From assembly GCF_964188315.1 (NCBI RefSeq), contig NC_135666.1:59954001-60018000 (forward strand): 64,000 bases of DNA, written 5' to 3'. Position 1 is the stretch's first letter. Each line of letters opens with the position of its first letter. The notes below the pieces were generated by a model. That model searched no databases. It had not been told where the DNA came from and saw only the letters and a program-made list of their open reading frames with translations. This document shows positions 4,985-64,000 of the stretch, in pieces. The DNA comes from Podarcis muralis. Lineage: Eukaryota. The translations under genes and the position numbers were made by a program.

Positions 4985-5177
4985 AAGACTACAGGACCTT
5001 CCCTGATACCCCAAAGTTACAATACGGTAAAAAAGGAATTAATAGACTACTGTGCAATTGAAAGACTGTTAGGAAAGACTGTCAAAACAGGGGATCAGGT
5101 CAAATAGGAAATTGAAATCTGGTCAGAAGTGTTATAATTATACTGTTGGGTGTATTTTACATCTGTTAAGACAAAGA

Positions 5178-6149: not shown

Positions 6150-6215
6150 GAGGAAGGTTAAAAGGAAATTACAGCCGTTCTTTTTTCTTTTTTTTCCCCT
6201 ACAAATTAAATCACA

Positions 6216-13999: not shown

Positions 14000-14137
14000 T
14001 ACAGCTTACCTGGGCAGTACTGGGTGGGATGGCTCAGAGCAGTAGTGAGCTGTGTGGTGTACCAGCGGGTAGCTCTGCCAGTGTGTCCATGCAGCTCTGA
14101 CCATGTCCCTGCCCCAGCACTGCCCAGGTAAGCTGTA
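14000..14137. repeat. Fold-back inverted repeat (old MITE-like)
   Basis: TACAGCTTACCTGGGCAGTACTGGG (14000-14024) pairs with CCCAGCACTGCCCAGGTAAGCTGTA (14113-14137), 1 mismatch; inner ATGGCTCAGAGC/GCTCTGACCAT pairing. Confidence 0.6.
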
Positions 14138-15296: not shown

Positions 15297-15621
15297 AATC
15301 TGTATCAGAACAGGTTCCTGGGCCTGGCTGCCATGGCATCGCCATCTAGGAACGCACAGAATCGGCGCCGGTGCAAAGAACCTCTGAGGTACAGCTACAA
15401 CCCAGACCAGTTCCACAACATGGACATTGGGAATGGTCCCCATGAGGCAGTCACTATTCCACGCTCTACCAGTGACACAGACTTGGTCACCTCAGATAGC
15501 CGGTCTACACTCATGGTCAGCAGCTCCTATTATTCCATAGGACATTCACAGGACCTCGTGATTTACTGGGATATAAAGGAAGAAGTGGATGCTGGGGATT
15601 GGATCGGCATGTATCTCATTG
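15297..15621 (+). CDS. HECW1: HECW1 coding exon (325 bp): NLYQNRFLGLAAMASPSRN...WDIKEEVDAGDWIGMYLI
   Basis: Translation matches the HECW1/NEDL1 N-terminus; tttgacag| acceptor and G|gtaagt donor. Confidence 0.97.
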
Positions 15622-17698
15622 GTAAGTCAGTCCCACCCTTAGGATTTAAAAAAATATATTTGCAAATATGAAGTGTATCTAAAGTGGGCCAGCACCAAGC
15701 TAAACCTAACTCACACCCCCGTGTGTTTTGAAGTACTCCACCCCCACACCGACCCAAACCTGCAAAACAAAGTTGGCCACAACAGGAGGTCTATTGAACT
15801 CCTGTAGGGCTCCCTTCAAACTGATGAGTGAATGACTCGCTCTAATTACCAAATAAGCATGTGTATTTGAATCCCATGGAATTCAATGAGACTTACTTAA
15901 ATATGCTGTCCTTCATGCCATATTAATAGTGATTTTCTTCGAAGAGCCAACATAGCTCAGTGACTAAGGCGGGCTTGATAAGATGGGTTCACATGTGAAG
16001 CCAAATACATACATTATGGAAGTTCCCCTCCCCCCCAAAAAATGTTAGGGGTACTCTCATTTTCCTACTCATACTGAAATACTGCCCCTCAATGAGGCCA
16101 AACTTAGATTCACAAAATGTTTAGGGGTATGCGTACCTCTGCGTCCCCCCACAAAAAAAGCACTGCATTATGGTCTTTCAAGATCTGCTTCCCCACCTGT
16201 AAAATGGAAGTAAGTGTGTCCTTATAAGAATGAATTGTAAGACAAGCACACTGTGTTTTAAGGACAAATGCTATAAAAAGAGTTCGCAATAAAAGGCTGC
16301 AAATGCTTGCTAGGCTCCCCTGTGCCACTGCCCTTTTCTTCTTTTGCACAAACAGCCATGTGCACTGCAATGTTCAATTCACAGTTGCTTATTTGTGACA
16401 GGGTGTTGTATCACACTCTAATGTCTACACTGAACACATCCTGGCAGTTCCTTGGGGAGGCACCAGGGAGGTGTTACCTGAGGCCTTGCCCTGTGACATC
16501 CAGCTTCTTTCCATCACCACCTCCTTCCTGGCTTTGACTTTCCTGGATCCCCTGTCCAGCCCTCCCTTCCTCCACAATTATAAGGTACCCTGAAGCCTCA
16601 CTGTCTACAGCTGTGTCTTGTCAGGCCCCACTGCAGGGAAGAGCAGTAGTATGTCTTGTCTGGCTACAGGCTTGTCTCACAGCCGTTCTCTACCAGCAAG
16701 GCCTGTTGACCAGGGTCCTGATCCTGCATCCATACAGGAGGGAAGCACAGGGGACAGTGGTGGGTGGTACTCCCCGGAAGTCCTTCACAAAGTTAAAGTC
16801 AAATACTACAGTGTTTGGGATTAATCTACCTCCTTCCTGTTTTCCAAACCAGAAGTGGGGAACAGGTTCTGTTCTTCTGGAGGTCAGTGAGGTCTAGAGA
16901 TCCTTCTTAGCACTTAGGCATGTAAGGAGAAAATATCTGTGGCTCCTTGTCCTAATTGGGCTAAATCATAGTAAATAGAAAGAATGAGAATAAATCCGGT
17001 GGTGTGGTAAAATGGTGGAGTTTGTTTCCTTCCTGCTAGTGCAGAGGGTTGGGTGAGGAGTTAACTCTGCAGCCGTTTTGAGAAATCTCCAGACTGCTGC
17101 TATTCCTAGGTCACTTGCTTGCTTATATAGAGATTTAGCAGGCACCTTCAGTGCCAACTTTTAAATGCCTGCTGAAAACTTTCTATTCTGCTAGGCTGGT
17201 GCAGGCATCCTTAAGAAGGCATCCTTCCACAATGGTTGACTTCTCTTTTTAACTTTTGTTAATGTTTTGTATTTTATGATTTTATTGCTGTAAACAGATT
17301 TGATATCTCTTTATGACATAGTGGTATACAAATATTTTTATAAATATTATAAATATCCCACATTTCCATTCACTCTTCAGTCCTCAAGGTGGCTTAATAA
17401 TGCAAAAATTCAATACCTCTTTTACATATAGTAAGGAAAACTCTTTAAAACCAATTCCAAACAATACCTAACCAAACAAGGGCTATCAGAGACCTAGCAA
17501 TGCTACAAGAATGGGGTGCCAGCACTGAAAACCTCATCCTGCTTATGGATGCTAATCTTTCTTCAACTAAGGAAGGTGCAAGACCCTGTCAGATTATTTA
17601 AGAGCCTGAGGAAGTTCACATTGGAATAACTATTATTTATTCATTATTTTGATAGAGAATTTCCAAGTCACCACGCAAGACAACCTGTAGGTGATTTA

Positions 17699-18080
17699 CC
17701 ATACTTTTCGGTGTATAAGACAAACTTTTTTTAACTCTAAAATAATGTTAAAAAACGGGGGTCATCTTATACATGGATAGTGCACAGGGGGGACGGGTGA
17801 TTGGTGACTGCATCAAGGGCTGCTTTGGATTGGCTGCTTCTGTGATAATTTGGTGTGTGAATGGTTGCTGTGGCAAGGGCTGCTGTGGGTTGGCTGCTGC
17901 TGTGGCAATTAGTCATGCGATTGCCGGCTGCTGTTGGCGAGTGGGCAGGCGCTTGTTGGCTTATCTGACACGAGCGATTGTCAGTGTTTGTTCGCTGGGT
18001 TTGTGATTTTCTACAATTCCCCCCAAAAGCTCTGGGCATTCCTCCCCCAAATAGTGTATAAAAATACAAAAGAGAAAAAG
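17699..18080. mobile_element. Degraded Tc2/pogo-type non-autonomous DNA element
   Basis: TA|CCATACTTTTCGGTGTATAAGAC left end resembles CCGTATTTTTCG termini; internal GGCTGCTGTGG/GATTGG repeats; right end poorly defined. Confidence 0.45.
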
Positions 18081-19491: not shown

Positions 19492-21570
19492 TTATACCCT
19501 CCCTTTTCCCTGACAGGCTGCTTAAATCTAAAAACAAGCACTGCAAAGAATATAGAAAAATCAATCATTAAAGTTAAACACTGAGAGAGAACAATAAACA
19601 TATATGAATTTTTTTAAAAAAACATACCAATAATTACAATAAAACAGCATGGCACCAACCCTTTCATTAAAAGCAGTCAATTCCCAATAGCTTGTTGGAA
19701 CAAGGTCTTCACTGCCAGCAGAAGGACAGCAGGGAGCAAGCCAGTCTGGCTTCTCCAGGGCAGTATGGGAGCAGCTCCCGAGAAGACCCTCTCCTGCAAC
19801 AGCACCAAATGGGCCTAGGAGGTGGTAATAATAATAATAATAATAAATTTTATTTATATCCCGCCCTCCCCAGCTGAAGCCGGGCTCAGGGCGGCTAACA
19901 ACAATAAAACAGTACAAAAGTACAGCATAAACAACATTCTAAAATCATTCATTATAAAATTAATTAAATCAAGCCACTGGCAGCCATTGGGCCAGAGCTC
20001 CACGAAGATTGCCGAAGGAGGGAGTCAGGCTGTGCCCTTGCCAAAGGCCTGGTGGAACAGCTCTGTCTTGCAGGCCCTGCAGAAAGATTTCAAGTCCCGC
20101 AGGGCCCTGGTCTCTTGTGACAGAGTGTTCCACCAAATCGGAGCCACAGCCGAAAAAGCCCTGGCTCTAGTTGAGGCCAGCCTAACTTCTCTGTGGCCTG
20201 GGACCTTCAAGATGTTTTTATTTGAAGACCGTAGGTTTCTCTGTGGGGCATACCAGGAGAGGCGGTCCCGTAGGTATGAGGGTCCTGGCCGTATAGGGTT
20301 TTAAAGGTTAAAACCAGCACCTTAAACCTGATCCTGTACTCCACCGGGAGCCAGTGCAGCTGGTATAGCACCGGGTGAATGTGATCTCGCAGCGAAGACC
20401 CCGTAAGGAGTCTCGCTGCAGCATTCTGCACCCGCTGGAGTTTCTGGGTCAGTCTCAAGGGCAGCCCCACGTAGAGCGAGTTACAATAATCCAGTCTGGA
20501 GGTGACCGTCACGTGGATCACAGTGGCTAGGTCAGGGCGAGAGAGGTAAGGAGCCAACTGCTTAGCTTGGCGGAGATGGAAAAATGCCGCCTTTGTTATA
20601 GCTGCAATCTGCGCCTCCATGGAAAGGGAGGTGTCGAAGATTACACCCAAACTCTTAACGGACGGTGCTGGCACTAATTGCGCCCCCGCAAGAGATGGGA
20701 GTTGCCCCCCCCCCCAATCCCATATCGCCCCGTCCCAGCCACAGGACCTCTGTCTTCGAAGGATTTAGCTTCAACCGGCTCCCACGTAACCATCCAGCCA
20801 CAGCTTCCAAACATCTGGTCAGTGTGTCTGGGGCCGAGTCAGGATGGCCATCCATCAACAGATAGAGTTGGGTGTCATCGGCATACTGATGGCAACCCAG
20901 CCCAAAACTCCGAACAAGCTGGGCGAGGGGGCGCATAAAGATGTTGAAAAGCATCGGGGAGAGTATCGCACCCTGCGGCACTCCACACACCAAGGAGTGG
21001 CGCGATGACAATTCCCCCCCAAGCGCCACCCTCTGTCCCAAATCTCAAAACCTGGGCAGGTTCCTATGAGGGAATATGGTCTTTCAGATAGCTTGGACCT
21101 AGGCCATGTTGGCCTTTATAGGTCATAACCAGCACTTTGAATTGTGCATGGAAACAGACCAATAGCCAGTGAAGCTGTTGTAGCAGCTGCAACCAATGAC
21201 CAGCCCCAATAATTGTAGGCCAGTAACCAGCCCCAATCAACAGTTTAGCCCGTTGATGTTTCTGAGCACTTTTCAAAGGCAGCCCCATGTAGAGTGAATT
21301 ACATTAAGCAGGGTGTAACTAAGGTGTGTGTCTCTGTGGCCAAATCAGGCATCTCAAGGAACAGGTGCAGCTGGTGAACTAGCTTTAACTCCTGGCCACC
21401 ACAGAGACCTGGACATCCAAACTCAGGACTGAATTCACAAGTACACCTAAACTGCGTATTTGAGGGAGTGCTACACCATCCAGCACAAACGGAATCCCCA
21501 GTCCCTGTTCTGCCTTTGTTTTATTCAAATGAGAAGATTTTGAATCAAAAGGGAAAGGGCTAAGCAATCA
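19441..21570 (-). mobile_element. Older L2 fragment split by a younger L2 (pieces ~19441-19826 and ~21042-21570)
   Basis: (TTA)n tail and L2-like 3' end at 19441-19530; decayed RT C-terminus (LDGVALPQIRSLGVLV) near 21400-21500. Confidence 0.65.
19827..21041 (-). mobile_element. 5'-truncated L2 LINE (RT C-terminal half), frameshifted
   Basis: GVPQGAILSPMLFNIFM, YADDTQLY, VKSLGVIFD, SRLDYCNSL, LQRVQNAAARLL; (TAT)n tail; frameshift near the poly-C at 20704-20715. Confidence 0.93.
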
Positions 21571-24404: not shown

Positions 24405-24934
24405 AAAAAAAGGTTAAGGACAAGGACGTTTGGATGGTTAAGTCCAGTCAAACTTGACTATGGGGTGCGGCGCTCATCTTGCTTCAGGCTGAGGGAGCCG
24501 GAGTTTCTTCACAGGCAGCTTTCTGGGTCATGTGGCCAGCATGACTAAACTGCTTCTGGCACAATGGAACACCATGACAAGTGCCAGAGCACACAGAAAC
24601 TCCATTTACATTCCTGCCACAGTGGTACCTATTTATCTACTTGCATTGGTATGCTTTCAAACTGCTAGGTTGGCAGGAGCTGGGACAGAGCAATGGGAGC
24701 TAACCCCTTCATGTGGATTCAAACCACAAACCTTCCGATCAGTAAGCCCTCAGAGGCTCAGTGGTTTAGACCAGTGTTTCCCAACCTTGGGCCTCCAGCT
24801 GTTTTTGGACTACAACTCCCATCATCCCTAGCTAGCAAGACCAGTGGTCAGGGATGATGGGAATTGTAGTTCAAAAACAGCTGGAGGCCCAAGGTTGGGA
24901 AACACTGGTTTAGACCACAGCGCCACCTGCTCCC
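24405..24934 (-). mobile_element. Older Sauria SINE interrupted by a hAT MITE
   Basis: Sauria body motifs (GGTCATGTGGCCAGCATGAC, AACTGCTAGGTTGGCAGGAGC); TSD AGTGTTTAA(A/G)TAAAC near 24388 and 24938. Confidence 0.85.
24772..24907. mobile_element. hAT (Charlie-type) MITE, 136 bp
   Basis: TIR CAGTGTTTCCCAACC, near-perfect palindrome, exact 8-bp TSD GTTTAGAC (24764-24771, 24908-24915). Confidence 0.95.
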
Positions 24935-27311
24935 ACAAGTGTTTAAGTAAACACATGTGCAATAAAGCATACCCAGAAGATCCAAATGTGGAAACCGTTT
25001 TTCTGCATATAATTCTGCTCTGGACTGGAGCATTAGGGCATCTATTTCCAAAGACAGTGCGCATAATCATTGAAGGCCTCCAGCTGCTTCATTTAATCAA
25101 AAAGAACTCAAGGTCAGAACCAGGGGACAACTTTTTGCTTCCTGTGCAAAACAAGTCAGAAGCTGGCACGACACATGTCAGTTCATCTTAACTTGTCAAG
25201 CTGGCAACACTGATCTGTGTAGCCAGGATTGCTTAATTCATGTGTACACTTTCAACACTGGTGCCCATTCAACAGTTTGTGTGTGAGGGATTGTGGCTGA
25301 TATGAGTGAAATGATATGATATGATATGATTTTCACATGCATCAAAGCTGTGAAATTTGCTACAAATGCACTTGTTTGTTTGTTTGTTTGCTTGCTTATT
25401 TTAAAATAGGTTTTCAAACGCTGAACAAATGGAGGGGTGTACCAAAGATGCTCCTCACTGGGGATCAGTTTGGTCTGGGGCTACATTTTCTGGCTACGTT
25501 CTCATTTAAAAATAAAGAGAAAGAGCAGACTGAATTATGAGTCATCATTGGTGGTGGGATAAAGTCACTCTCTTAAGTTATTGTTGATAGGAAAGATAAC
25601 AGCATGAACTCTTCTTGGACAAACTGAATTTTGCACCCTTCATCCTTTACTTTTGGGTTGCAATTATTCAAAAAGACAATCCTTAGTAAGGGAAAGCAAT
25701 TGGCAAGCAAAGTGAAGCTTAACTCCCAGTCTTAGGGACTCACATGCCCTTCTTTAGTAAATCATGAGTCAGTGAGTAGCTGAAGTGCATGATAGGCAAA
25801 AGGGTCTTCCAAAGTCTCTGTCAGTGTTTATACTGGAGAAAAGCAGGTTGTAAAAAGCTCTTGGTGCTTTTGGCTCAGTTAGATCTAATGCCATTGACTA
25901 TTTTGCCTTCCTCATCATCCTCAGCGCCATATTTTAGTTGCTAGACTAGAAGCAGCTATGGTGCACCATATGTGACCTTGTGCCGGCCATCCTCTCTCTG
26001 CCTAATCAATCTCAATTAAAATGTCCTAAGGTCCATGGAGGAAGAGTGGAATAGAAACATTAATTAATGATCTATGATCACCACCACCCTCAGAAGTTCA
26101 TGCTTCACATTCCCCCAAACCAGTTGTTTTCTTGCCAGAGGTAGGATAAAAGTGTGGTGTTGTATGTTCATTACTACATCTTTGTAGAGGTTAGCATTTA
26201 CTAAAAGATTAGAAAACCATAATGAATCATTTTCCTCCTGATTTTAAATGTATCTATAACCACAGTGGTATCCTCAAGCTGTGCGCCCATGCATTTTTCA
26301 CGACACCAGTAGCTATTATTTTTCCCTACCAGAAGGTATCTTGTTTCTCTCAGAGATAGAAATTTTCTCTTCAAAAATTATTTTGTATGGGCAAGATTCA
26401 ATACCTGTCTTGCTAACACTAGTTCTGGAAATATGGCAGGTTTAAAGTTCACTGGAGCATATGTCTGCTATATAGCAAAATGATAGTTGCTGATTGTTCT
26501 GAGGGAACTCCCAACTTCTCTTGGGGGCAGAACCTTGTTCATCATGTAGCTTTCCTGAAATCAATGGAACAATCTGTGGAGAAAATATTACTTGAAGAGG
26601 GTGTTAAAGCTTTAGATAATTGACTGGAATGTAATGGGGACCACAAAGTTCTTTTTCTTCTTTTTCTTCTTCTACTTCTTCTTTTTCTAGTATACCACCC
26701 TTCAACCAAATATCTCAGGGTGGTTCACAGCATAAAAATACAAGATAAAAACACAAAATCCATAATAAAAACAACAACAACAAAACTACACAATCTCCCA
26801 CAATGGAGAAAGGGAACCTGTGCTTCTACAGAGGGATGCTGTGGACCCAAACAAGTTTAAAGATCCTGAGATCTTTTTACATTGTTACAAACAGAAGATA
26901 AGGAAGTAAATCTGTTTTTTTCTTGATTGCACAGCTTCATACCATAGCTGGTTCATCCAACCCGATAAACCAAACTACACAAATGTGCAGATACCTGGAG
27001 AGGAGCTTGCCATCACTTTACTTTTCCCAGGTATATTTTGGTTTACCATGTTATGCAAACCAGGCCATGGAAAACTATTGCACCGGGGTTAGGAAAAAGC
27101 TAGGGTAGACCCCTTTACTCTGATGTCTACATTTATATGTGTAAGGTTTGGGGCTTTTTTAAAAAAATGGAGGAGTATCATGGAGGGTTTGCTGGTGAGA
27201 GATAGGACACTTTCCTGCCTTTCAGTGATAAATTATTTTTAAAAAAGAAGCTGTGTTTTCAGCCCTTTCCTTTGCTCTGATTTCACTGGCTCTCTTTTGT
27301 TAATTTTGCAG

Positions 27312-27419
27312 ATGAGGTTTTGTCTGAAAATTTCCTAGACTACAAAAATCGTGGGGTGAATGGCTCTCACCGAGGTCAGATTATCTGGAAGATTGATGCC
27401 AGCTCTTACTTCGTAGAAC
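27312..27419 (+). CDS. HECW1: HECW1 coding exon (108 bp): DEVLSENFLDYKNRGVNGSHRGQIIWKIDASSYFVE
   Basis: Matches HECW1; ttttgcag| acceptor and C|gtaagt donor; phase continuous with the previous exon. Confidence 0.97.
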
Positions 27420-29704
27420 GTAAGTATATCATAGTGCTATTACATCATACTTCAGTGAAAACAGGAAGAGCTGAGCTCCCACACTACATGGGTGTTTTGG
27501 GGAAAATTTAATGCGTGTGGCAAAGAAAAATGATCAATTGCTTGTCCAGAAACTATGCTTCATGAATAACAGAAGTTACTACTGAAAGGATGCAGTGGGT
27601 GAAATTGCATCTATAACTCTGTATATGTTGGTGTTATTAAGCACGAACATCTCATAACATGAGAGGGTTTCAGAACAGGTGCTAAATACTTCTGTGTTTG
27701 GAGAAAAACTATTTTCAAGTTCATTTATATTTATTTAACATCAAAATTATTGAATCTGCTGGAGCTTTTATCCTTGTTTTAGTCTTCTGTAGTTTGGATC
27801 AGTTTCTGGCAGAGCAAATCTTCAATCCCTTTCTTGGAGTGTGTGTTATTCTGAATAACCATTTCCGAGGCAATCTCACAGAAGTATTTTTTTAAAGGGA
27901 ATTAATTCCATATTGCATTTGCTGAGCTCACTGCATAACATACCGTTGATGCGCAATAAACTATGTGCTTGGGTTGTGAAAAATTATGTGCTCATGCATA
28001 GTAAAGGTGAATCTTTCATTGTTGCGTCCGTGCCTGAGGGCATCATACTTAACATGTGTTGCATGTGCTGCTGTAAGGAGTTCAAAATGTAGATTAATAA
28101 AGGCGCTCCAAACAGGTTGTGTTGTGTGACAACTGGCTGCAAAGGAAAATGAAACATTGTTAAAACAAAGCACTGCTTGATAGGAAGTTAACTGGGATAA
28201 CTGGAACAATTTTCTGGCAGACTTAAGGAAGGTTACTTTAAACCATTTGTGAACAACCTGTGACAGAGGTTTTGAATATTTAAAACTGTGGTTTCAAAAT
28301 GGATTACAGAGCATACTGCGGGGTCCTTGGAAACTTATTGGGGGTTCCTCAATGAGGAAGTCTGCTGTGAAGGACAAGTTTCTTAGAAAGATTGATTTGC
28401 CTCTACTACTAGTCTTCCTCTGCAAGGGTCAGGACCAACAACCTCTATGTACAGAGTGTGCTATTCCTCAGAATTATTGGCAGCGTGCAGGATTTTGATG
28501 GCTGACATGCAAAGCTTCCTTGGTATACAATGGAAAATAGATTCCGTTCACTGGCCTAAGCTAAATAGTTTCACAGATTATGGACTATAAGAACCAAGTT
28601 GCAATGTGCCAGAAACGCCAGTGAGATTTCTGTACCAGTTCTGTCTGCTTCTAACACAGCTGTATTCTCGTTGTGCCATCAGGGTGGGGCAGCTACACAG
28701 CAGGAGGTATCTGACTAGGTGTGTCTGATTAGGGTGTGTCATTTTAGGGTACAAAACGTAATTTTTGCACAGTTCTTTAGTGAGGGGTCTTAAAAATGTG
28801 TTTTTGGGTGTCAGGAATTCAAATCTGCTTTTATTTTTGTAATTGGACAAAAATTTAGCTTGGAAGCCTACACTTGACAAAGAAGCACATAAACTGTGTT
28901 TAAAAACCAAAGAATTTTAACTTTGCCTTCTGAAAATGTCAGGTAATAATAAAACAAAAGGCCTGTATTTAAAAACTGTGGGAATGTTCAGGATAGTAGG
29001 AGAGGATATATTGATTTGTAAGATTTGTACAAATTACACACACAAAATTGCACAAACAAATGTGTGCATTGGGATAAAATCACACTACAATGTTAATAAA
29101 GGACTTGGGGGGAATTGCGAGCTGATGTGGAAATCTGGAGAACTGAAGATTGGAAAAATGAGAAACTGAAATTGACAGATGCACCCATCCCTAACTGGCA
29201 TGGTAGAAGAGGCATTATCAAGCTGCAAAGTGATACAGATATGAAAGCTCTGGATTTTGGATGAGCTAGGTTTTCTTTTTTGTTTACTCAGATATTGTCT
29301 TCTGTAATTGATTGTTAATTCAGTTAACTCTAAGGGGAGTTCTGCCATATGCTTTTCTTTCATCATATTACCAGTATGATTTCATTATCTACGTACTTTC
29401 TTAAATGAACCCCTCCTCTTTTTTTGTATGGAGCATGCTCTTCTGGCTGCAGAATCTGCTTCCAAGCAGCCTCTAATTCTTACTCAGGACAGCAAGTCCT
29501 TCCATATTAATTGTCAGTTGGGGAGTGGTACACTGGTATGGTACAGGTGGGGCTCTTTGGTCTGTGCTTATTATGCCCCCCCCCAATTCATGGGGATAAA
29601 ATCCGTTCTATAGCCATTTGAGATTTTGCACCATCTTTGCCTTTCTAACAGATACTCTGCCTCCAAGCAGCTCCACAAAAGGCAGAAACTCCAAAGCATA
29701 GCTT

Positions 29705-39125: not shown

Positions 39126-41309
39126 TATATGAATAGTTCTAGGAACTGATTTTACCTGAATGTGGGAATTTTTTACCTAGTGCCATGGAAGAAGATCCCC
39201 AGTGAATCATTTTGCATATTGTAGTTAGAGATGAGCCATTGTGTCCACATATGGACTTCCTGTTTTGCTTATATCTAGCAAAGAACAGCACTGGCAAAAA
39301 GGAAGGTATTCAGATTTGCACAGGAATGGGTCGTCATTGTGCCACCATCCATGTACGATACAGTTTCAGTAGTAAAAGAAGAAGAAGAAGCCAGATTTGC
39401 AGTGAGCCTGAAATATGAAGCTGAAACATCCCAGGGAAAGCAGTATTAAAGTGCCAACAAAACTTCTTTCACACACAGATTCCCTTCTTTTTTCCTTATT
39501 CTTTTTGCAATACTAAATGCATTGCAGGTTGTAAAATGACCTGATATCCTCTTGATATTTTAGAAATTGTTGGGTTGGCATGATAACTGATATACACACA
39601 AGTGCTTTGACATTACATCATCTCTAGGGAGCTGGATGGATTTGCTAACACAACTTTTGTCAGCACTAATGGAAAAGAGAAAATGACCTTGGTTACCTGA
39701 TCTAGTGAACTCTTACTGCCAAGAGAAAAATGGCAGCCATAAATTTTCCACAAGGAATTAAGCTACTCTGGGGTTTGAACCAAGGACTTCAGGAATGGAG
39801 GCTGGGATCAAGTTTGGTGAGCCACAATATTGTGGCGCACAAAGGAGAACTGACAACTGTGAGTGTTTGACAGTTTGAAGTCACGTGATTGGCCAAGCCT
39901 GATATGAAATACTAGGACCCTCGTCCTGAGTTTTGCTTGGCTAGCAGAGCAGTAATTTCTGCTTCCTCTTCTTCAGGTTCCTGCTCAGGCTTAGGGAACC
40001 TGAGCCAGAGAACATACTTGCTGTGTCTAGATTCAGGTTTGGATTCCTTTGTCCAAACCCTTATAGTAGCCAACATTTATTTGGGACCTATAAATAGGGC
40101 ACTCAGAATGAACAAAAACATACATTAGTCCTTACTTGCATTCCAGAAGTTTCTAACCAACAATGTTTTTAACTGCATATAGTTCCCTTGATTAATTTAG
40201 TGCACCCATTATCACAGGATAACTTAGCGGATTCTCTCGTTCCAGCCTTAAATCAAACCCCTGCTGTTTTATAAGAGTAGAATTATAGAACTGCAGGGTC
40301 ATCTAGTTCAATCCCCAGTAAAGCAGGAATATGGCCATCTTCTGTGAAATTTGATGTAGGCTTCGGTTTTGTTTATTTTCCCTATCTGAAGCCTCTCTTT
40401 TGAGTTTTGTCTGGATTTTCTGGCTGCTTGTTTGAGCAGAAGATGTTTCCACACTTTCTTTATAAGTCTTATCTTTTTTATCAGTATTCAAATGTCTCTT
40501 CAAATGTGTACACTTTATTTGTTATTTCTGTAGCACCTCATTAGCACTTTACAGTATTATGCCAGGATCAAAAAATTATGCCACTCGTTATTGATGTCTG
40601 ATGGGAGCTGGATTTCTATTTCTGAAGTCTAGTGCAAGAGCCTATACTCCAAAGTATGTGGCACCCGCAAGCTCTTGGGCTTGCCTAAGGTGGCTCTTTG
40701 GATCTAGGCCCTTAAGTTATTCATTCTCACAGTAGAAGGGCAAGAGGGAGGATTAGCAAAATCCTCCCTCACAGTGGCCAGAATCCAAAGGGCTTCCTGA
40801 GGTTTGCTCAAGGGCTTATGTGTGCCTGCAGGACTTTTTACTTTAGTTATTTGATTTTACAGCAGAGTCATCTGCTAGATCTCAAAATGCTTTTTGAAGG
40901 TCCCTTTGGTTTCAAAAGAAATTTGTCACAGTGGAAAGAGAGCTGCTGTTTTAGCTATACACATCTTTGAACTTGAAATCACTTATTTGAAGAGAGGTCT
41001 TCCATGTTTACCATGAACGCTTTGATATGTTGGATTAACCTGACTCTCCTGACAAAATCTAGAAAAGCAGCGTCATGCAGGAACCTTTAGAATAAGGCTG
41101 AAATCCTAAGTGCACTTGCTTCCTAGTAAATGTGCATAGGGTCATGCTATAAAGTTTATATTTAGGCAACATTTACTTTTTAAGTCAGAGAAGACTGTGC
41201 ACAAAAAATGAATCCACAGGGCTAAATTAATATTAGCTTTGTTAGGAGATATATTCTTAGGGCACAGAGAGAACTTCAGCAGGTCTATGTGTACTCATGT
41301 TTCCCTCCC

Positions 41310-41960
41310 CTTTTCTAAACGAAAAACCGTTCCTCATTGATGAGCTGCCCAGCCCCATGAACATTTTTGTTGTCCTTTTCTGAACCTTTTCCAGCTCTAC
41401 AATACAGTGGTACCTCCGGTTGCGAATGGGATCCGTTCCGGAGGTCCGGCCGCATCCCAAGGAATTCGCAACCGGAGGACCGCTTCTGCGTATGCGCGAC
41501 ATGATTGAGCGTTTCTGAAATTTATGTATCCAGAGGGTACGACTGTATCCTTTTTGTGACATGGCAACTTGAACTGTACAAAAGTATTCCAAGTGTGATC
41601 TCACCATAGATTTGTATAACAACAACACTGTGATGCGGGCAGGGTTCAAACCTTTTACTGATGATCTGTAGCATGGGATTTCTGTCATGCACTGGGTCAA
41701 CGTTTTCATCAGCATGACCCCATGATCCCAGTTCACCAGTTCAGACTCCATAAGCATTTATGTGAAGGCAGGCTTACCTGCTCCAATGTGCATCACTTTT
41801 TACAAATTTATGTTGGAGCCCATTAACCACATCAGGCCGATTAACAAAGGTTGCAGAGATCTTTGTTTACTCTTACCACTTTTGTCATCCATAAACCTGG
41901 GCACCTCACTACTCTGCCCTAACTGCAAGTCAATTATGAACAAGTTAAAAAGCACAGGAC
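41310..41960 (-). mobile_element. Decayed CR1 fragment (RT C-terminus)
   Basis: VLFNLFIIDL..PRFMDD, LYKSMVRSHLEY, LEKVQKRTTKM. Confidence 0.8.
41405..41545. mobile_element. Short Tigger-type MITE nested in CR1
   Basis: TA|CAGTGGTACCTC ... GAGGGTACGACTG|TA. Confidence 0.8.
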
Positions 41961-44149: not shown

Positions 44150-44244
44150 CTGAAACAAAGATCTGCTTCAAATACTACCATGGAGTGAGTGGGGCACTGC
44201 GTGCAACAACCCCCAGTGTGACAGTCAAGAATAATGCAGCTCCT
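44150..44244 (+). CDS. HECW1: HECW1 coding exon (95 bp): (P)[31 protein letters not shown]
   Basis: Matches HECW1; ttcttttag| acceptor and CCT|gtaagt donor. Confidence 0.97.
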
Positions 44245-44802
44245 GTAAGTTATGCTTGCTTCTTTACAGTGCTCATCAAGTAACTTTGTGTTGCCTTTTG
44301 ACTGTCTTAAGACCCCCTACTTTGTTTTCAGTTCTAGCTGTGAGGTTGCAACACCTTTCAAAGAGGAACAAAGTGTTTGCTTTTAAGAGCGAAGAATCAC
44401 ATGGATTAGGACTCTGTATGATCAGGTCTCATGCAGTGGATTCTGTTCACACTGGGAGCTCCTCCACCACATTATTTTAGTGCCACTCACAGCTGAATGA
44501 ACCTGGGGCACGGAAATCACATTGCAGGAAGGCAATGGGTGGTGCGGAAGAGACGCCCTACCCCCTCTGAAATAAGTTTTCAAATATGTTACATCTAAAC
44601 ATTCTGGTTAAATCAGGATCATTGGCTTTTTAAAATCATAAGCAGTTTTTAATGATGAATGCAGATTTTGCTAGGTTCAACCAAGGTCCTACACTGGTTT
44701 ATGCCAGCTCAGAGAGTTGGTTTTTATTTCAATATGACATCTCAACTGCATATATAAGTGCTCTCAAAAACTGTGGCACTTGGAATGGAATATACAAAGC
44801 AG

Positions 44803-44965
44803 NNNNNNNNNNNNNNNNNNNNNNNNNNNNNNNNNNNNNNNNNNNNNNNNNNNNNNNNNNNNNNNNNNNNNNNNNNNNNNNNNNNNNNNNNNNNNNNNNN
44901 NNNNNNNNNNNNNNNNNNNNNNNNNNNNNNNNNNNNNNNNNNNNNNNNNNNNNNNNNNNNNNNNN
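44803..44965. other. Assembly gap (163 N)
   Basis: Run of N. Confidence 1.
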
Positions 44966-46504: not shown

Positions 46505-47574
46505 CTTCTAGATAAGTATACATATGATTGCACCCTAAGGGCTGGATTCAACTAAACAGTTGCACTAGCAGGAGCTAGGGCAACAAGTACTGCTTGTGCA
46601 ACAGGGCTTTCCTCCCTCTCCTCCCCCTGCATACTCCTTGAGTCCCCCAAATTGGCTCGGGGGGGGGGAGCAGTTTGGAGAATGCCCAGAACAGGATTCA
46701 GGGGGGAGTAGAGGAGACACTGTTTCATTTGGCAAACAGAAATGCTTGACCTGGCAGAACGATTGCCTTAGCGCAAGGTTGAATCTCACCCAAGATGTGT
46801 AGCCTCTCATCTAAGCCCTGATTAAATGGTGAATAACCCTGAAAATAATTTGGGTAAACAAAGTTGTGTTGCGGTGTAGCAGACCACAACTGGGTATTAA
46901 TTTAAAATGTAAATAACGAAAAAGGCTGTACTTGAAGAGCAAAATTCAGCAAAACCAACTAACCAGGTTTTGCAAGTTGTTCACTACCTAGAAACTCTTT
47001 CAGAGGAACATCTGGTCAATTTTTTAAAATGCTGATTTTTCTGGCCTTGATTGTGCTTTGCTGGATATTTTAGGGAAGGAACTTGCTCATACAAGCAGCT
47101 CTACTAAAAGAGCAGCAAAAGGTCTAACTTAATGTGAATGAAGCAAAGCAGCTATGATTAGTCAGCAGTTTGCTATGCTAATCTCACTCTGCTGTACCTA
47201 GCCAGGATTGCTAGAATGGCAACTTGGAGACTGTTGAAGTCGTGTTGGGCTTGAGATTGTGCTTTGCTGCCATGATTTGAGTGGTGAATGAAAAGGTCCC
47301 TGCATCATTACTGGTGGGCACAGAGAGGTACCACTGGTAACAGAGGGTAAATATTTCTGAATGGCTAGTGGCACTCTGCAGGCACCTTCCCCTTGCTGAT
47401 CAAACAGCTAAGTCTATATGCGTGTGCCCCCCTTTTCAAAGAGCTAAAATGCCACTACTGCTCAGGAGCAGAGGGGATTGGATTCCATATTTTCCCGGCC
47501 AAACTTGCTGGTTTCATCTTTTTCCAAAAACAGCTCTGAAAGTGCAGCTCTGTGATGTTCTACATGCAAAGGTA

Positions 47575-48752
47575 TTTCATGTTTCCAGGATGCCACATAT
47601 CAGCAATGGTGACCAAACACTTGAGGTGGTAGATGATTTTGTCTACCTGGGTTCCACCATAACCAGCAACCTCTCCATCAACACTGAGCTGGACAGGCAT
47701 ATTGGCAAGGCAGCTATGCCAATGGCTCATCTCTCCAAAAGAATATGAGAGAATGTGATCCTAACATCCAGTACCAATATGAAGGTCTACCAGGCTTGCA
47801 TGTTGAACACACTGCATTATGGATGTGAGTCATGGGCAACTTACAGCTGCCAGGAGTGACATCTCAACGCCTTGCACATGCACTGCATCATGAAGTTTTG
47901 GGCATCACATGGCAGGACAGAGTCTCAAACAAAAATGTGCTCTCCCAAGCTCATATTCCCAGCATGTTTACACTGGGAATAGTCATGTCCGTATAATGGA
48001 AGATGGCAGGATTCCTAAGGACATGCTGTGCAGTGAGCTGATTTCAGGCACCTGACCAGTTCTGTGCTACAGAGATGTCTGCAAATGTGACATCATCATC
48101 ATCATCACCATCACCATCATAAATTTATATACAGTGGTACCTCGGGTTACATATGCTTCAGGTTACAGACTCCGCTAACCCAGAAATAGTACCTTGGGTT
48201 AAGAACTTTGCTTCAGGATGAGAACAGAAATTGTGCTCCGGCAGCGCGGCAGCAGCGGGAGGCCCCATTAGCTAAAGTGGTGCTTCAGGTTAAGAACAGT
48301 TTCAGGTTAAGAACAGACCTCTGGAACAAATTAAGTACTTAACCTGAGGTACCACTGTACTGCCCTTCACTCGAAGATCTTGGGGGCAGTTCACAAGATA
48401 AAAATATAGGATAAAGGCACAAAATAGTTGAAAAGAAAAGAAAAACTCTTGGCAGCATCAAAACCAACCCTGCCATGCGGGAATCCCTTGCAGATGACCA
48501 TAGAGCATGGAGACAGACAGTCAGGTTTTGCATCCATAGCAGTGACCAGAGAAGGAATGGCTGCTGGGAGGAGGACAGAGAGAAGAAATGCCATGGGGCT
48601 TCTGCAGCAGCAGCACCAGCCATCTTCCTCTGTCCAAGATGCAACAAAGCATGTCTCTCCCTTGTCGGTCTCTACAGCTACAAGCAGATGCTGTGTGACA
48701 ATGGCACACTCCTCCATTGCCTCCTGAGACAGACAGATGCAAACCAACAACA
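47575..48752 (+). mobile_element. 5'-truncated RTE-clade LINE (RTE-1/Expander-like), interrupted
   Basis: LEVVDDFVYLGSTI, IGKAA, KVYQAC..LHYGCESW; C-terminal CPRCNKAC..GLYSY; (CAA)n tail; insertion at ~48089-48465. Confidence 0.85.
48132..48357. mobile_element. Tigger-type MITE nested in an L2-like tail nested in the RTE
   Basis: TA|CAGTGGTACCTCGGGTTAC ... AACCTGAGGTACCACTG|TA; flanks rejoin to AAATTTATA(TA)CTGCCCTTCA, an L2/SINE-type 3' end. Confidence 0.9.
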
Positions 48753-52200: not shown

Positions 52201-53136
52201 ATCTGTTTCTGAGTAATTGCCTGACATTTTCAAACAGATTGATATGTGCCACTTGTTGTGGGGAGGGCAGTGATTTATGAGCAATCAGAAATGATGCATG
52301 GTATATGGTGTATTAATGTCATTCGTCATTAGGTTTGACTTAAAATATATATACAGAGGCTGTTAACTGCTTTCTTGGTTTTCCTTCAATTCATGTGCAC
52401 CCAAGAAATGCCTTGGGAAAACCAGAGTGTGCTGAACTCATTTTTAACAAAAACATTAGGCCTTCTGGAAGTCAGTAGCCTTGGTGAACACATTTTTCAG
52501 AGCCATTATGATGAGATGAAAATATATCCATATTTTCTCGGGAAATTCTGCTAGCAGTGAATTACAAATAGGAGTGGAAAGTGCCTGGCTGGAAACTCCT
52601 TGGTGGTGCCTTGATCTCCTGAACAGATAGCAAACTGACATTTAGGACATTCTGATTGTTCACTGTGTGAGCTGGCAGAGCAAGGAGATTTGCAGAGCCC
52701 AAGGAGCTCTAGAAACACTGTGTCTAAATCTCTTCCATGTTCCTTGCATGATTTTATTCATCCTTATAACTCTCTGACCAGTTTCTGAATGCCTCCTACC
52801 CTCCCCATGTTTCTTGGCCCATAAGAAGGCCTTTGTCCATCACACATGCAGCTACAGGCTTTAGCAACAGTCTTTAAACTATTTTCATGCAGCTAAGGAT
52901 GCATACACACCATGTCTTTGAAGCACATACCCACAAGAATCATGAGAACTGTAGTTTGTTAAGAATGCCGGCCATGGTTGCTCTATGAGGGGCAAACTAC
53001 AGTTCCCAAGATTCTTGGGGATAAAGGAAATGGGCTTTAAATGTATGGTGTGTACATTTCCCATGGCAATCACTGAGAATTGTCTCACTGGAAAGGGGGG
53101 GGAAGCTAAAAATTGTTCATGATCAACTTTCTGCAG

Positions 53137-53306
53137 ATTTTCAAGCTTTTGGCCTGAAGAAAGGCATGTTCTTCAATCCAGACCCTTACCTAAAGATTTC
53201 AATCCAGCCTGGAAAGCACAGCATCTTCCCAGCTCTTCCTCACCATGGACAGGAGAAGAGATCCAAGATCATGTGTAACACGGTCAATCCCATCTGGCAA
53301 GGAGAG
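53137..53306 (+). CDS. HECW1: HECW1 coding exon (170 bp, C2 domain): [57 protein letters not shown]
   Basis: Matches HECW1; ttctgcag| acceptor and GAG|gtgag donor. Confidence 0.97.
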
Positions 53307-58312: not shown

Positions 58313-60269
58313 TACCAAGATCACCATCACCACTTCCTTGTTCACCTGGGTCATGTGCAGGGAGGAAAGGACATGGATAATCTGATCAAGGGAAGGGTTT
58401 TTAACTGCATATCAAATATGCAAAATCAGTTGTGGCCAGCAGAATCAATATTGATCTAGATTGAAAGCAACATATTGAGGATGAGCGTGAATGATTTTGG
58501 ACTGAGAAAAGCTACATTTTTTGTGCTGCAAATGGGCCACAAAATGTGGCCACAAGCCACAAAATTGTTACTGGTGAGCTATAGTAGTAGTTCATAATAG
58601 AGTTTTTGGTGTATTTGAGAAACCTTTGTAAGCACCTGTTGGATTCTGGGTTTTCTATGCCCTCAAAAGGTCTAAAAGCTTGTGTGGTTTGTAAAAAATG
58701 GCAACTAAAGATTATAAGAATGTCAAGCTGAACTGCTAAAATGTTGTTACAGATTACAGAATGACTTCTTCAGATAATGACAGCCATTCTTATTTTCTTT
58801 AGTAACTATATTAGATTCCCTGAGCTGGCTTCTGTTATTCAATTTATTTCCTTCTCATTGAGTTTTATACCTTTGGGGAATGGGCCCACGGGAGCGTCAA
58901 AAATTGGCTGGTGCATCTAGTGTGCTTATGTTTAAGGTCCTATCTATTACATGAGATGCACCGCGAGGGCCTGAAAAATTATTCTTTGTTGAAGGGCAGC
59001 TGAGCATTTTATACTGCCCAGATTTTGATGTCTCTGTGTACCATCGGGTAATCTGTATAGTTGCACTTGACCGCTCTTGATTTCCTTCCTGTCTTGTCAA
59101 CAGCCGTTCCATTATGCTTCTGAGGCAGAAGGGTGTGTGTGTGTGTGTGGTCCTTTGAAGGTTGGATGCAAGTTTAGAATTGAGCATGTGGAAATAAAAT
59201 GTGTGTTCAGTGAAAAGTATAGTAAATTGGTAGTGGGTCCCCTCTTGAGGCATGGGTTTGTGTAGGTGCCTGGTAATCCAGCCTCTGGCACTGACCCATG
59301 GGTCTGGGTCTGAATGGGAAAATGATAAAATAAGCATCAACTTTAAATAAATAATAATAATAACAAATATGTTTGCTGTGAAACTTGCAATCTTCTCTTG
59401 CAGCAGTCAGGGGGAATAAGGCATCCAGAAATCTATATCTAACTTTTCTTACAGGATTTTGTTCATCAGGACCTCATTAAGCAATGTTTGGCTACAAATA
59501 GCGGTATAAAATTTAAAAAGCCACCAGTTTTATAATCAGCTGTACATGAAGAACTATTGTTCGCAAGGCTGAAGCTTCTAAATATTCAATGATATTTAAT
59601 CCTTAGTTTTAGTATCCTCCAATATCTGTTTAAGCCAGAAAATACCCATTTGTTGCAATGCTTTATTTTATATCAGCGCTTACCACAGTGGTGAATGGAT
59701 GTTGCTAGCCTTAAATACCTTTACTGTCAATAGCTTCCAGTGTAGCATTTAATCTGTAAAATAATAACAACTGTAAAGGAGTTGCTTAGAGGAATGGGAG
59801 ACCCTTTGTTTACTGAAGAAGCATTGCCATCACACTGAAAGTGACTATAAATAAAGCAAGGAAATAGCTGCTAGACAAGCTTTTAAAAGGGCAAGATTTT
59901 CAGGAGTCTCTGAACAAGCTGAAACAGATTTCGCAAAAAAAGAAAAATAGGGTCACAATTATGGGAATGATCTGGGATTTTTGGCTTTACTGTGCCCATA
60001 CTGTGCCCATGGAGGGGTTCACCATAGAACCCAGTGGGTTCCTGTCAGTCTTTAAGGCACACAGGCATGGGCAACAGTGAGCAAGGGAAAGTCAATGTAC
60101 ATGTGTCCTGCGAAGATATAACCTCCCCTCTCCTCCCCAGAGCCCTAGTCCTCAAGTTACTGCTGTTCAGGATGGAGTAACTTGCAAACTAGGAAGCATG
60201 ACTATCAAATGCACAGAGGAGGGTGAGGTGCTCTAGTTGGTGGCTTCTGCACCTCCAGCAAACAAGAAC

Positions 60270-61135
60270 CTAATTCCAAATCCAGTGATGCAGAGGAGTG
60301 GTGAGAGGCACCAGCTGGGAAATCCCCAAAGGAACCCCCAAAGGAAGACGGCTCACAGCCAGGGATTGGTGGTGGGATGACAATGAGCGGTCAGAGGGAT
60401 CAATCTGGGAGGAGGTGTGTCAGAAACCGAAGAGGTAACAGAGTTTTGTGAGCAGGAAGAGGCTGGGGCAGAGAGCAGTCCAGGATCAGAGGTGGAAGCA
60501 GAGGTGGGAGAGTGCACTGGCATAACTAGTGGGTGTGGGAGATGCAGACCGCCCAAGGCGGCACGGGGCAGCACAGCGAGAGGGGCGATGAAAGACCCAG
60601 CTATACCACTGAGTGGGCGGGGAAGGGATGGTGCCAGAAAGTGAGTGGGGGCAAAGTTACGGAGAAAAGTGTGTGTGTGAATGTGTAGTCTTATGTGTAG
60701 TCCAGGTATTTGAACACTGGGCCATATTGAAATTTGGGGGTGGGGCAAAATCCCTAGCTGTGCCACTGGGAGAGGGGTCAAGAGACAGCAATGAGTCAGG
60801 CTGTTGAGGAAGCCAGGCTGTCTCCCCCTTCTGCAGCAACCAGCTTCCCTTCCCCCTTGTCCCCCAGAACCCAAATAGGTATGAAGAGGGTGGAGCAGAG
60901 ACAGTGAAGAAAAAATAGCCTCAAATTGCTTGGGAAGGAACCAGGGGCGGGGAGACTTAGAAGCTGTGGGAAGGTGGGGACCTTCAGTCCTTGCAACTGT
61001 CTCAATGGACCAAGATCTACTGGGAAGAGTTGCTGTGCCCACTAGGCCTAAGCTGTTTTGCTTCTTTGGATAAAGAGTTAACTTCACTGACACCTTGTGA
61101 GTTGTTGCTGACCTCTGCCCTGACTCCTGCAGACA
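60270..61135 (+). mobile_element. Solo-LTR-like repeat interrupted by a hAT MITE
   Basis: GCAGAGGAGTGGTGAGAGGCACCAGCTGGG..TCAGAAACCGAAGAGG shared with 62835; degenerate GATAAAGAGTT polyA-like motif; ends ..GACA. Confidence 0.5.
60515..60768. mobile_element. hAT-type MITE
   Basis: TIR CACTGGCATAACTAG / CTAGCTGTGCCACTG; 8-bp TSD GGAGAGTG / GGAGAGGG. Confidence 0.7.
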
Positions 61136-61504
61136 CCAGCCAAGTGCCCACCCAAACCAGGGCCAGGGAGCCAAGCACCTCCCAGTCAACAGGGCCTTCT
61201 CAGTGGTGCATGGAGTGGCCCCTAGGGAGAACCACTTGCCTATAGCTGAGTTGTCCATATAAGGCAGGGTGGAGAAACTCAGGCCTGAGAGCCAGAAGCA
61301 TAGCTGTCAACGTTTCCCTTTTTTAAAGGGAAATTCCCTTATTCTGAATAGGATTCCTCGCAAGAAAAGGGAAAAGTTGACAGCTATAGCCAGAAGCAAC
61401 CCTGCATGCCCTCTAGCTGCCCACCACAGGACTCTTCCTAGGCCATGCTCCCTCCCCAGGCACTGAGCACACCCTCCTTGAGTGTTTTTGCCTTGCTAGT
61501 GACA

Positions 61505-62097: not shown

Positions 62098-62834
62098 ATT
62101 CTGTATTTTCCATGCTGCACTTGCAGGTAAATTTACATCAGTCACAACAATATTGAGCAGGAGATCAAGAGTCAGTTGTTTCTTTTATTAGCAAGTGCTG
62201 TGTCTATAAATAGACCACTCAAGCTAGATTTAGCTCCCAGCACAAGCATCTTGGACAGCAAACCAAGTATCCCCCCCCCCATCTTTTTCTTTCACTCTTA
62301 GCTTTTCTCTCACCGTGAGCACACACCTGCATGCAAAGGCATTTGACATCTCTTCTAAGAAAACTGAAAGTGACATGAGTGTTGTATTGCTGTAGTATTG
62401 AAAGTAGGCCAGGTCAGGTAAGGACAGCAAGCTGAACAGTTACAAGTCCCCCATTTTCCTCTGCTCATCATGTTTCCATTAACTCCCCAGAAATAAGAAC
62501 AGAGTGATTTCTTCATTCCTGAAATCAGCTGGGATAAACAGGGAGCAGAACTCGCGCACTTCGCTTCATCTTGGGCATCTCTTTTACCTCCTCCCCCATC
62601 ATTCAACAAACACTCAGAAACAATGAGTAACTTTCAGAAACACCACTAACATCTCTGAGCTCTGGGAAAAAATTTTTTAAGTGAAATCACAATAAAAAAT
62701 TTGATTTTGTTATTGGATTTCTTAAACTGGGACTGTAGAAAGTGTCTAAAAATGGAAATAGAATGTCCTGAAAGGAATGGGGAACAGATAGTGTTGCTCA
62801 CAATTAAATTTAAAATATTTTTAAAACTCTAGTC

Positions 62835-63040
62835 AGGACTGGCTGGGTGCCGAAGAGGGTGGCAGGCACTAGCTGGGAAACCCCAAGAGAAGGAGGCTCG
62901 GAGCCAGGGGAGGGGGAGGGGGACAACAAAGAGGGTGAAGAGGGAGCACACTTGGTGATGGTGTCAGAAGCTGAAGAGGCAAACAGGGTTTAGGGAGCAG
63001 GAAGAGGCTGTGGGCCGTCTGGAGTCAGAGGCGGGGGGGG
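62835..63040 (+). mobile_element. Fragment of the same LTR-like family as 60270
   Basis: GTCAGGACTGGCTGG..GGCACTAGCTGGGAAACCCCAAG..TCAGAAGCTGAAGAGG..GAGCAGGAAGAGGCTG. Confidence 0.5.
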
Positions 63041-63343
63041 GGCAGGAATTGGGTTGAACAACTATTCTTTGGGATGCAGAGATTACGTGCTTTAAATGTG
63101 TGGTGTGTGCACAGCCTGTTGCTTTAGTCTGAGTCAGCAAGGCTCTTCTTGAATATCCCACACAATTTAATGTTACATCTCTCTTTTAGTTTTGTCTCCA
63201 TTGCCCTGGCTGTACTTGAGTGTATATGCGACATAACTGTGAGGCCTTTAAGGTTATATCTCAACATATTTAGCATAAATCCTGATCATTTGTGAAGTGA
63301 TTTCACCAGTAGTTTTTGAGCTGTATACTTCTGTTCTCTAGAC

Positions 63344-63420
63344 CAGTGTTTCCCAACCACTGTTCCGCGGCACACTAGTGTGCCGCGAGATGTTGCCTGG
63401 TGTGCCGTGGGGAAAATTCG
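63344..63420 (+). mobile_element. Left terminus of a hAT (Charlie/Buster-type) DNA transposon; right end not in window
   Basis: CTCTAGAC target (63336-63343, NTCTAGAN consensus) then TIR CAGTGTTTCCCAACC (identical to the 24772 MITE); subterminal TGTGCCGCG / CGCGGCACA / TGTGCCGTG repeats. Confidence 0.8.
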
Positions 63421-63479
63421 AAAGATTTTTTTTTTTTTGTAAAAGTCAAATTAGGTCCTAATCTATCCCTCGAGCGCCT

Positions 63480-63977
63480 CTTGTCCGTTATTGTGACGCA
63501 TGAAGCGTGTTCCCGCCCACTCCCCGCCCTCCCTTGCTTCTCTCTCTCTCTCTGTGGCGTTCTCCGCCGCTTCCTGCTGGGCATGCGCAGCTCGCCTCGC
63601 ACTTCCATTCCGGCCCCTCCTTCCCCCGACTACCCCGCCGCTCCGTTCCTTTCTCTTTCTCGCGTGTCAGAGAGCGGCGGCGCAAGCGCGGCGGTTCCCT
63701 CAGGGCTGACGGAGGGCTCGAGGAGGAGGAGGCAGGACGTGGAGGCGGAGAAAGCGGCGGCGGCCACCCCCCACCTCCGGCTCGAGGCCCGCGTAGAAAG
63801 CTGAGGTGGAGAGATAGATAGAGGTGGGCGGCGGCGGCGACGACCACGACCAACCGCCACAGTAGTTGTAGCGGTGGCGACGGCGAGCAGGGACTCCCGC
63901 TCTCTCTCCGTCGTGTGTCTCTCTCTCTCTCTCTCCCGGGCCCGTCCGTTGAGTCTCCCGCGCGCCTCGGCTAAAAG
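63480..63977 (+). promoter_or_regulatory. CpG island with TATA-less housekeeping-type promoter and 5'UTR
   Basis: Dense intact CpGs; CRE-like TGACGCA (63494), GC boxes CCCGCCC (63512, 63523), NRF1-like GCATGCGCA (63581), ETS-like CTTCC/TTCCGG; (GCG)n and (CT)n 5'UTR tracts. Confidence 0.75.
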
Positions 63978-64000
63978 ATGAGCATCGAGATCCCGCCGGG
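63978..64000 (+). CDS. Start of a PKA type II regulatory subunit-like CDS (PRKAR2A/PRKAR2B-like; MSIEIPPG...), cut by window end
   Basis: AAGATGAGCATCGAGATCCCGCCGGG; A at -3; peptide matches the RII dimerization/docking-domain start (MSIEIP[P/A]GLTELLQG). Only 7 full codons plus 2 nt are visible. Confidence 0.6.

Follow-up and report, generated by a model that had tools for sequence, protein, structure and literature searches.

A hAT transposon end beside the start of a PRKAR2A-type gene in a HECW1 intron of Podarcis muralis: a probable Pack-hAT that captured a CpG-island promoter region and the first codons of its host gene

Introduction

The window analysed in this study, a stretch of 64,000 nucleotides from the lizard Podarcis muralis (contig NC_135666.1, positions 59,954,001 to 60,018,000), ends with the left end of a hAT transposon, a CpG island and a few codons that resemble the start of a regulatory subunit of protein kinase A (PKA), all inside an intron of another gene, HECW1. 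This raises the question of how the beginning of one gene came to lie within another, and whether the transposon is its vehicle or only its neighbour. In plants there are many well-described cases of cut-and-paste transposons that have captured fragments of genes, whereas in animals such capture has been described as rare and nearly always single-copy. A survey of such elements (Pack-TIRs) in 100 animal genomes identified 370 cases, of which 208 are carried by hAT, the commonest carrier, and four are multicopy, the described example having three copies (Tan et al. 2021, Nat Commun 12:4280; PMC8277862). The survey includes a frog element, hAT-N8_XT, which carries a fragment of the CAPSL 5'UTR and has distinct TSDs; its main text gives no lizard case, and no Pack-MULE was identified in the animal reference genomes scanned (PMC8277862).

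A first-pass annotation of the window had proposed that a DNA transposon captured a host promoter and first exon at this locus, and had added that the cargo might drive a transposase, form a fusion protein with it or act as an internal promoter of HECW1. We analysed the composition and motifs of the locus, searched it against protein collections and compared positions 62501-64000 with public sequencing runs (X1, X2, X15 and X24). We find that a Pack-hAT, i.e., a Pack-TIR of the hAT superfamily that captured a promoter and part of a first coding exon, is the best explanation of the locus, with a probability of about three in four.

Results

The element lies in an intron of HECW1

Part of a HECW gene is encoded on the + strand of the window. 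Its HECW_N domain begins in an exon at approximately 15333-15620, and further HECW_N exons are found near 27311-27420 and 44150-44246 (+ strand). The Pfam HECW_N pieces have E-values of 2.7e-23, 1e-10 and 3.9e-14 and cover positions 1-56, 52-102 and 87-119 of the profile. An exon at approximately 53120-53306 (+ strand) encodes the first half of the C2 domain. It was recognised by its motifs (NTVNPIW and an 11-residue motif) and by a weak match to Pfam C2 (positions 11-52 of 104, E = 0.0028), whose 18.3 bits lie below the 22-bit cut-off; a search of the PDB sequences with this exon gave no match. The remainder of the C2 domain was sought by motif throughout the window and is absent, so HECW1 must continue downstream. 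The motifs match those that we take to be characteristic of HECW1, and it is on this basis that we assign the gene to HECW1 rather than to HECW2. The setting proposed by the first-pass annotation is in agreement with these results, as motifs and Pfam matches place a HECW gene on the + strand of which only half of the C2 domain is reached. The last HECW1 exon lies about 10 kb upstream of the insert, with no gap between them; the single run of N in the window (44803-44965, 163 N) is located some 560 bp past the exon at about 44150-44246. The element is sense-oriented and occupies the intron of HECW1 that interrupts the C2 domain.

The introns of HECW1 contain other repeats. The first large one harbours a full-length L1-like LINE in sense orientation (5112-9977), whose two ORFs, one of 345 aa at 5112-6149 and the other of 1,253 aa at 6216-9977, are both intact. 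ORF pieces resembling the C-terminal part of the reverse transcriptase of CR1/L2-like LINEs are found at 20207-21041 (-), 41257-41757 (-) and 47368-47748 (+). A block at 60200-61300 has a GC content of 0.51-0.59, a strong G skew and a CpG observed/expected ratio (o/e) of just 0.14, and may be an old decayed repeat; it includes a proline-rich ORF of 301 aa on the minus strand (60353-61258).

A hAT left end that shares its TIR with a complete MITE

Direct reading of the sequence supports the left boundary given in the first-pass annotation, position 63336, as well as the target, the TIR and the subterminal repeats that it had described. The 8 bp at 63336-63343, CTCTAGAC, are a target of the hAT type that fits the form nTnTAnAn, and they constitute the left copy of the expected TSD. 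They are followed by the left TIR, CAGTGTTTCCCAACC, at 63344-63358 (+ strand), an exact 15-bp match. The transposon-derived left arm, as delimited by read depth and sequence, extends over 63344-63440 (+ strand) and includes, beyond the TIR, a perfect palindrome of 20 nt, GCGGCACACTAGTGTGCCGC (63367-63386), two copies of GTGTGCCG that begin at 63377 and 63400, and a run of T (63427-63440) after which the DNA becomes GC-rich. The inner limit of the arm is uncertain and lies between 63411 and about 63460.

The exact 15-mer of the TIR occurs three times in the whole window. Allowing up to three mismatches raises the count to 9, where 2.25 would be expected, and in 100 shuffles of the window this number was never reached. 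A complete hAT MITE of 136 bp at 24772-24907 (24764-24915 with its flanks) has perfect 15-bp TIRs, both identical to the one at 63344-63358, and is flanked on both sides by the 8-bp TSD GTTTAGAC. This TSD also fits nTnTAnAn, the form that it shares with CTCTAGAC. Hence, the left TIR of the element is a member of a hAT family whose 8-bp TSDs are proven in the same window. The interior of the MITE contains a long inverted repeat, GGACTACAACTCCCATCATCCC and its complement, and is unrelated to the sequence from 63359 onward. Since the MITE shares the TIR and not the interior, this TIR serves several non-autonomous hAT families. An inverted copy of the TIR was sought in 63359-64000 with up to three mismatches and none was found, in line with the statement of the first-pass annotation that no right TIR precedes the end of the window. 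The window holds no second copy of the interior of the arm, and a full-text literature search for the TIR string returned no paper.

The cargo resembles the start of a PRKAR2A-type gene

The arm is followed by a block resembling a CpG-island promoter and 5'UTR of a PRKAR2A-type gene (63441-63977, + strand), as indicated by its composition, motifs, read depth and RNA. Positions 63460-64000 have a GC content of 0.66 and a CpG o/e of 1.03, whereas the o/e is 0.22 across the 544 bp upstream and the GC content of the surrounding HECW1 intron is about 0.45. The block has the Sp1, NRF1, ETS and CRE-like motifs that the first-pass annotation had listed, although such matches are by themselves no proof of function: CCGCCC at 63513 and 63524, GGGCGG at 63826, GCATGCGCA at 63581 (NRF1-like), CTTCCTG at 63570 (ETS-like) and TGACGCA at 63494 (CRE-like). 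We found no TATA box in it. The cargo may consist entirely of 5'UTR, because RNA covers the whole block from 63451; for the same reason the promoter and 5'UTR shares of the cargo are not separable. As regards the possibility of a retrocopy, the block begins beside a hAT TIR and not at an L1-type target, and no 3' end of it is visible in the window.

From 63978 to the end of the window the sequence reads ATG AGC ATC GAG ATC CCG CCG G, i.e., a start codon and the first 7 2/3 codons of the peptide MSIEIPPG (63978-64000, + strand), where the end of the window cuts the codons. An in-frame TAA immediately precedes the ATG; it is created by the window's own letter at 63974, where the reads differ. 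RII-beta presumably has IPAG at the place where the cargo reads IPPG, which, if so, points to the alpha type. The ATG and the peptide are as the first-pass annotation had described them, and they fit the start of the dimerisation/docking (D/D) domain of human RII-alpha, which is SHIQIPPGLTELLQG (PMC4138556). The peptide thus fits an RII D/D start, with the alpha type favoured, although eight residues cannot settle the type. The cargo shares with PRKAR2A, its presumed parent, the N-terminus MS..I.IPPG behind a TATA-less CpG island; it differs from this gene by a read depth far above single copy and by its location inside HECW1.

The coding part of the cargo within the window amounts to eight codons and is too short for protein tools. 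The three cargo ORFs (+63400-63801, -63491-63853 and +63507-63818) had no match in the protein collections. We looked for a transposase ORF in 63344-64000 and found none, and no splice donor is visible in the part of the element that the window contains. The suggestions that the cargo drives a transposase, or that it contributes to a fusion between the D/D domain and a transposase, find no support in these data. The interior of the element would derive from a host gene and not from a transposase, a match that rests on eight codons.

Read depth suggests a multicopy family

The library type of X2 is a guess ("DNA?"). Its contigs total about 1.4 Gb and its unique flank contigs have depths of 28.4 (62501-62982) and 26 (63089-63343); given this total and the uniform depth of the flanks, X2 looks like whole-genome sequencing. 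In this run the hAT arm reaches a depth of 689,046 (63351-63400), against 26-28 in the unique flanks. The terminal and subterminal sequence of the element is therefore highly repeated in the genome, and this depth means that there are tens of thousands of copies with at least 90% likeness. Many loose ends begin at 63337-63344 and after 63411/63418: most of the other copies of the arm part from the window after 63411, where their loose end reads AGGGAGGCGGG..., and some after 63418.

Two further observations concern the repeats around the element. The commonest continuation after 63411 in the other copies of the arm is GC-rich, AGGGAGGCGGGCGAG..., and abundant in DNA and RNA runs; a larger sister family of Pack-hATs may carry it as cargo. 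The G-rich stretch at 62951-63050, immediately before the element, is a repeat too, with a depth of 11,000-18,000 in X2 against 26-28, whose other copies begin at 62960.

The cargo is much less abundant than the arm, and yet far more abundant than the flanks. In X2, the contig covering 63466-63553 has no difference from the window and a depth of 2,571, and that covering 63687-63839 has one difference and a depth of 3,855. The depth of the cargo per contig is about 95-140 times that of the flank, and bins that sum several variant contigs reach about 12,800, bearing in mind that a summed contig depth is not equal to a copy number. In X1, single positions of the cargo are overlapped by 31-43 distinct contigs. 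We considered simple-repeat words as a source of this depth and rejected them, as the contigs 63466-63553 and 63687-63839 contain no pure simple-repeat 31-mer; artefacts of (CT)n account for the joints and loose ends that occur at 63536-63556 and at 63915-63936. Altogether, the depth suggests that the cargo is present in near-identical copies on the order of 100 or more, which is an order of magnitude and not a count; should X2 be a library made from open chromatin or by ChIP, the source of the excess would instead be promoter activity. Arm and cargo are linked in the RNA contig X15 record 16, which runs unbroken from 63387 to 63935.

A contig that leaves the window at the TIR border

One X2 contig (record 18, 1,262 letters, depth 26) bears on the presence of the insertion. 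Its letters 1008-1262 match 63089-63343 on the minus strand, and the match ends exactly after 63343. The other 1,007 letters extend beyond 63343 and are unlike 63344-64000, as far as their coordinates tell, the letters themselves not being displayed. We checked the minus-strand convention with record 17, which ends 7 letters past 62982 and thereby covers 30 letters of the repeat beginning at 62960, the length expected of contigs built from 31-mers. The convention also fits X15 record 10 when compared with the loose end "before 63338". A contig from a carrier of the insertion would stop about 30 letters inside the repeat, from which we infer that the X2 animal lacks the insertion. Record 18 looks like an empty site, with a break exactly at the border between TSD and TIR.

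We also queried the junction itself with a sequence of 60 nt (63314-63373), all of whose 31-mers cross the junction and of which only two words were sampled. Both words occur in 18 DNA-type runs with two organism labels and from seven studies. The RNA runs contain one of the two, which shows that at least one of the words is not specific to the locus. These data weakly suggest that the insertion is common to many animals and hence, given the apparent empty site, perhaps polymorphic.

Sequence variants and RNA of the cargo

Four runs agree with one another and all differ from the window at six positions (63601, 63684, 63807, 63840, 63917 and 63974, where the window has A, A, T, A, G and A, respectively), and two of the six window-specific letters are CpG>CpA changes. 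The differences fit a single, slightly decayed copy compared with the consensus of its family, although population divergence alone could explain them. We considered and set aside the idea that they indicate another species. The unique flanks also differ, by 1.6-2.3%; because of this divergence of the flanks, the differences alone cannot separate a family consensus from population divergence.

The stranded raw reads of X24 cover 63451-63950. Most of this RNA is from the + strand, at a depth of 6-19, and a fifth to a quarter is from the opposite one; over the flank at 63151-63300, X24 has no RNA. A linked variant with at least five differences per read, which diverges from the consensus by 3-4%, makes up about half of the sense reads (GCGGCG inserted after 63753, 63784C, 63818C, 63854G and 63875C). 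This variant is found on the sense strand only, whereas RNA of the consensus type is found on both strands, and the DNA contigs of X1 and X2 do not have it. Its source may be the 5'UTR of the single-copy parental PRKAR2A, or else a second subfamily; the consensus-type RNA on both strands may come from passenger copies. The letters private to the HECW1 copy were not seen in any of 46 informative RNA observations at 63601, 63684, 63807 and 63974. The proposal that the cargo is an internal promoter for a truncated HECW1 thus finds no RNA read that bears the letters of this copy.

Alternative explanations of the locus

Could the block be a genuine PRKAR2-type gene, native to the HECW1 intron or nested in it, with an unrelated truncated hAT fragment about 100 bp upstream? 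Its CpG island is intact (o/e of 1.03), sense RNA covers 63451-63950, and the ATG stands in a good context and is followed by RII-type codons. The right TIR is absent from 63359-64000, and fragments of hAT are everywhere in the genome. A single-copy gene is nevertheless at odds with a cargo depth in X2 of about 100 times that of the flanks, with a flank contig that departs from the window exactly at the TIR border, and with RNA in which 0 of 46 informative observations show the private letters of the HECW1 copy. We know of no syntenic reason for a PRKAR2 gene start to lie in an intron interrupting the C2 domain of HECW1, and a nested gene is unexpected there. We consider this explanation unlikely, and we give the same small weight to another one, in which the 5' block of PRKAR2A became multicopy by other means (segmental or tandem duplication, or as the cargo of another element) and the hAT end is a coincidental neighbour. 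The depth reveals an excess of cargo and not hAT ends that bound each copy, and the transition from arm to cargo (63411-63465) is poorly delimited; both points speak for a bystander. Yet X15 record 16 joins the arm (63387) and the cargo (63935) in one piece, and the X2 contig breaks at the TIR and not where the cargo begins.

The last explanation to be weighed is an error of assembly, in which a repeat common to both would have led to a false join between the HECW1 intron and the PRKAR2A promoter. We regard it as extremely unlikely. The join does run across a repeat that exists in tens of thousands of copies, and among the pieces listed none bridges 63343/63344 with at least 31 letters on each side. 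Nevertheless, the junction is a textbook hAT target and TIR, both sampled junction words are present in the 18 DNA-type runs of seven studies, and the sole run of N in the window is that at 44803-44965, far from the junction. The Pack-hAT explanation retains the central proposal of the first-pass annotation, the capture of a host promoter and first exon by a hAT element, which is supported by the family of the TIR, the depth of the cargo and the contig that leaves the window at 63343; its ideas on transposase expression are not retained.

Discussion

A possible path to the element and to its insertion

If the locus is a Pack-hAT, positions 63344-64000 would cover about two-thirds of a non-autonomous hAT transposon, counted from its left end. 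The element would have lost its interior and received in its place the 5' end of the host gene for an RII-alpha-type PKA regulatory subunit, i.e., its CpG-island promoter/5'UTR and the first codons of the D/D domain. The capture probably relied on gap repair or on template switching following excision, at the CpG-island 5' end of the gene, a model discussed for Pack-TIRs and Pack-MULEs (PMC8277862). Because its TIR and subterminal repeats were kept, the loaded element would have stayed mobile in trans by means of an autonomous hAT transposase, and would have amplified to roughly 100 or more near-identical copies. One of these would have inserted at CTCTAGAC with sense orientation, within the intron of HECW1 that divides the C2 domain. 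The right TIR and the second TSD of the HECW1 copy, on which its position between two TIRs depends, would lie outside the window: beyond 64000 we would expect a right arm, the right TIR GGTTGGGAAACACTG and a second CTCTAGAC. The insertion probably has no effect on HECW1, and this copy is probably a neutral passenger.

Comparison with known gene-capturing elements

The lizard element resembles the Pack-TIRs of other animals in being a non-autonomous TIR transposon whose interior would be a duplicated fragment of a host gene. It differs from them in two respects: it is present, by depth, in some 100 or more copies, whereas those of the survey are mostly single-copy, and its cargo comprises a whole CpG-island promoter region with a start codon. 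Pack-hATs are already known in animals; a family of this size that carries a whole gene start is unusual.

Another vertebrate element, the Helitron HelibatN3 of vesper bats, carries the promoter of NUBPL, six codons and a splice donor, and new transcripts can originate from its insertions where these lie in introns in sense orientation (PMC4778049; PMC4224331). It has in common with the lizard element a captured promoter together with the opening codons of a host gene, and a high copy number. However, HelibatN3 is a rolling-circle element that captures DNA by read-through of its own 3' end, and its splice donor makes it an exon trap, whereas no donor is visible in the lizard element. In plants, the Pack-MULEs of rice preferentially duplicate GC-rich pieces of genes and raise the local GC content where they land (PMC5861414). 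The likeness lies in the cut-and-paste mechanism and in the GC content, as the lizard block (0.66) stands in an intron of about 0.45; in contrast, Pack-MULEs are plant elements of the Mutator superfamily with TSDs of 8-11 bp.

Implications for HECW1 and for lacertid lizards

A mobile promoter in sense orientation could in principle start truncated transcripts of HECW1. We think it very unlikely that many copies, the one in HECW1 among them, retain an active captured promoter and that the family provides lacertid lizards with a mobile promoter and exon trap. Were it active, the HECW1 transcripts starting there would lack HECW_N and half of the C2 domain, and a short RII D/D peptide could compete for AKAP binding.

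The lizard element would be a second vertebrate case, beside the bat Helitron, of a DNA transposon that scatters promoters. It would offer a natural system in which to study the mechanism of capture and its apparent bias for GC-rich 5' ends, and would allow one to ask whether mobile promoters rewire host genes. The HECW1 copy adds to this a dated and oriented insertion in a large neuronal E3-ligase gene, possibly one with a presence/absence polymorphism.
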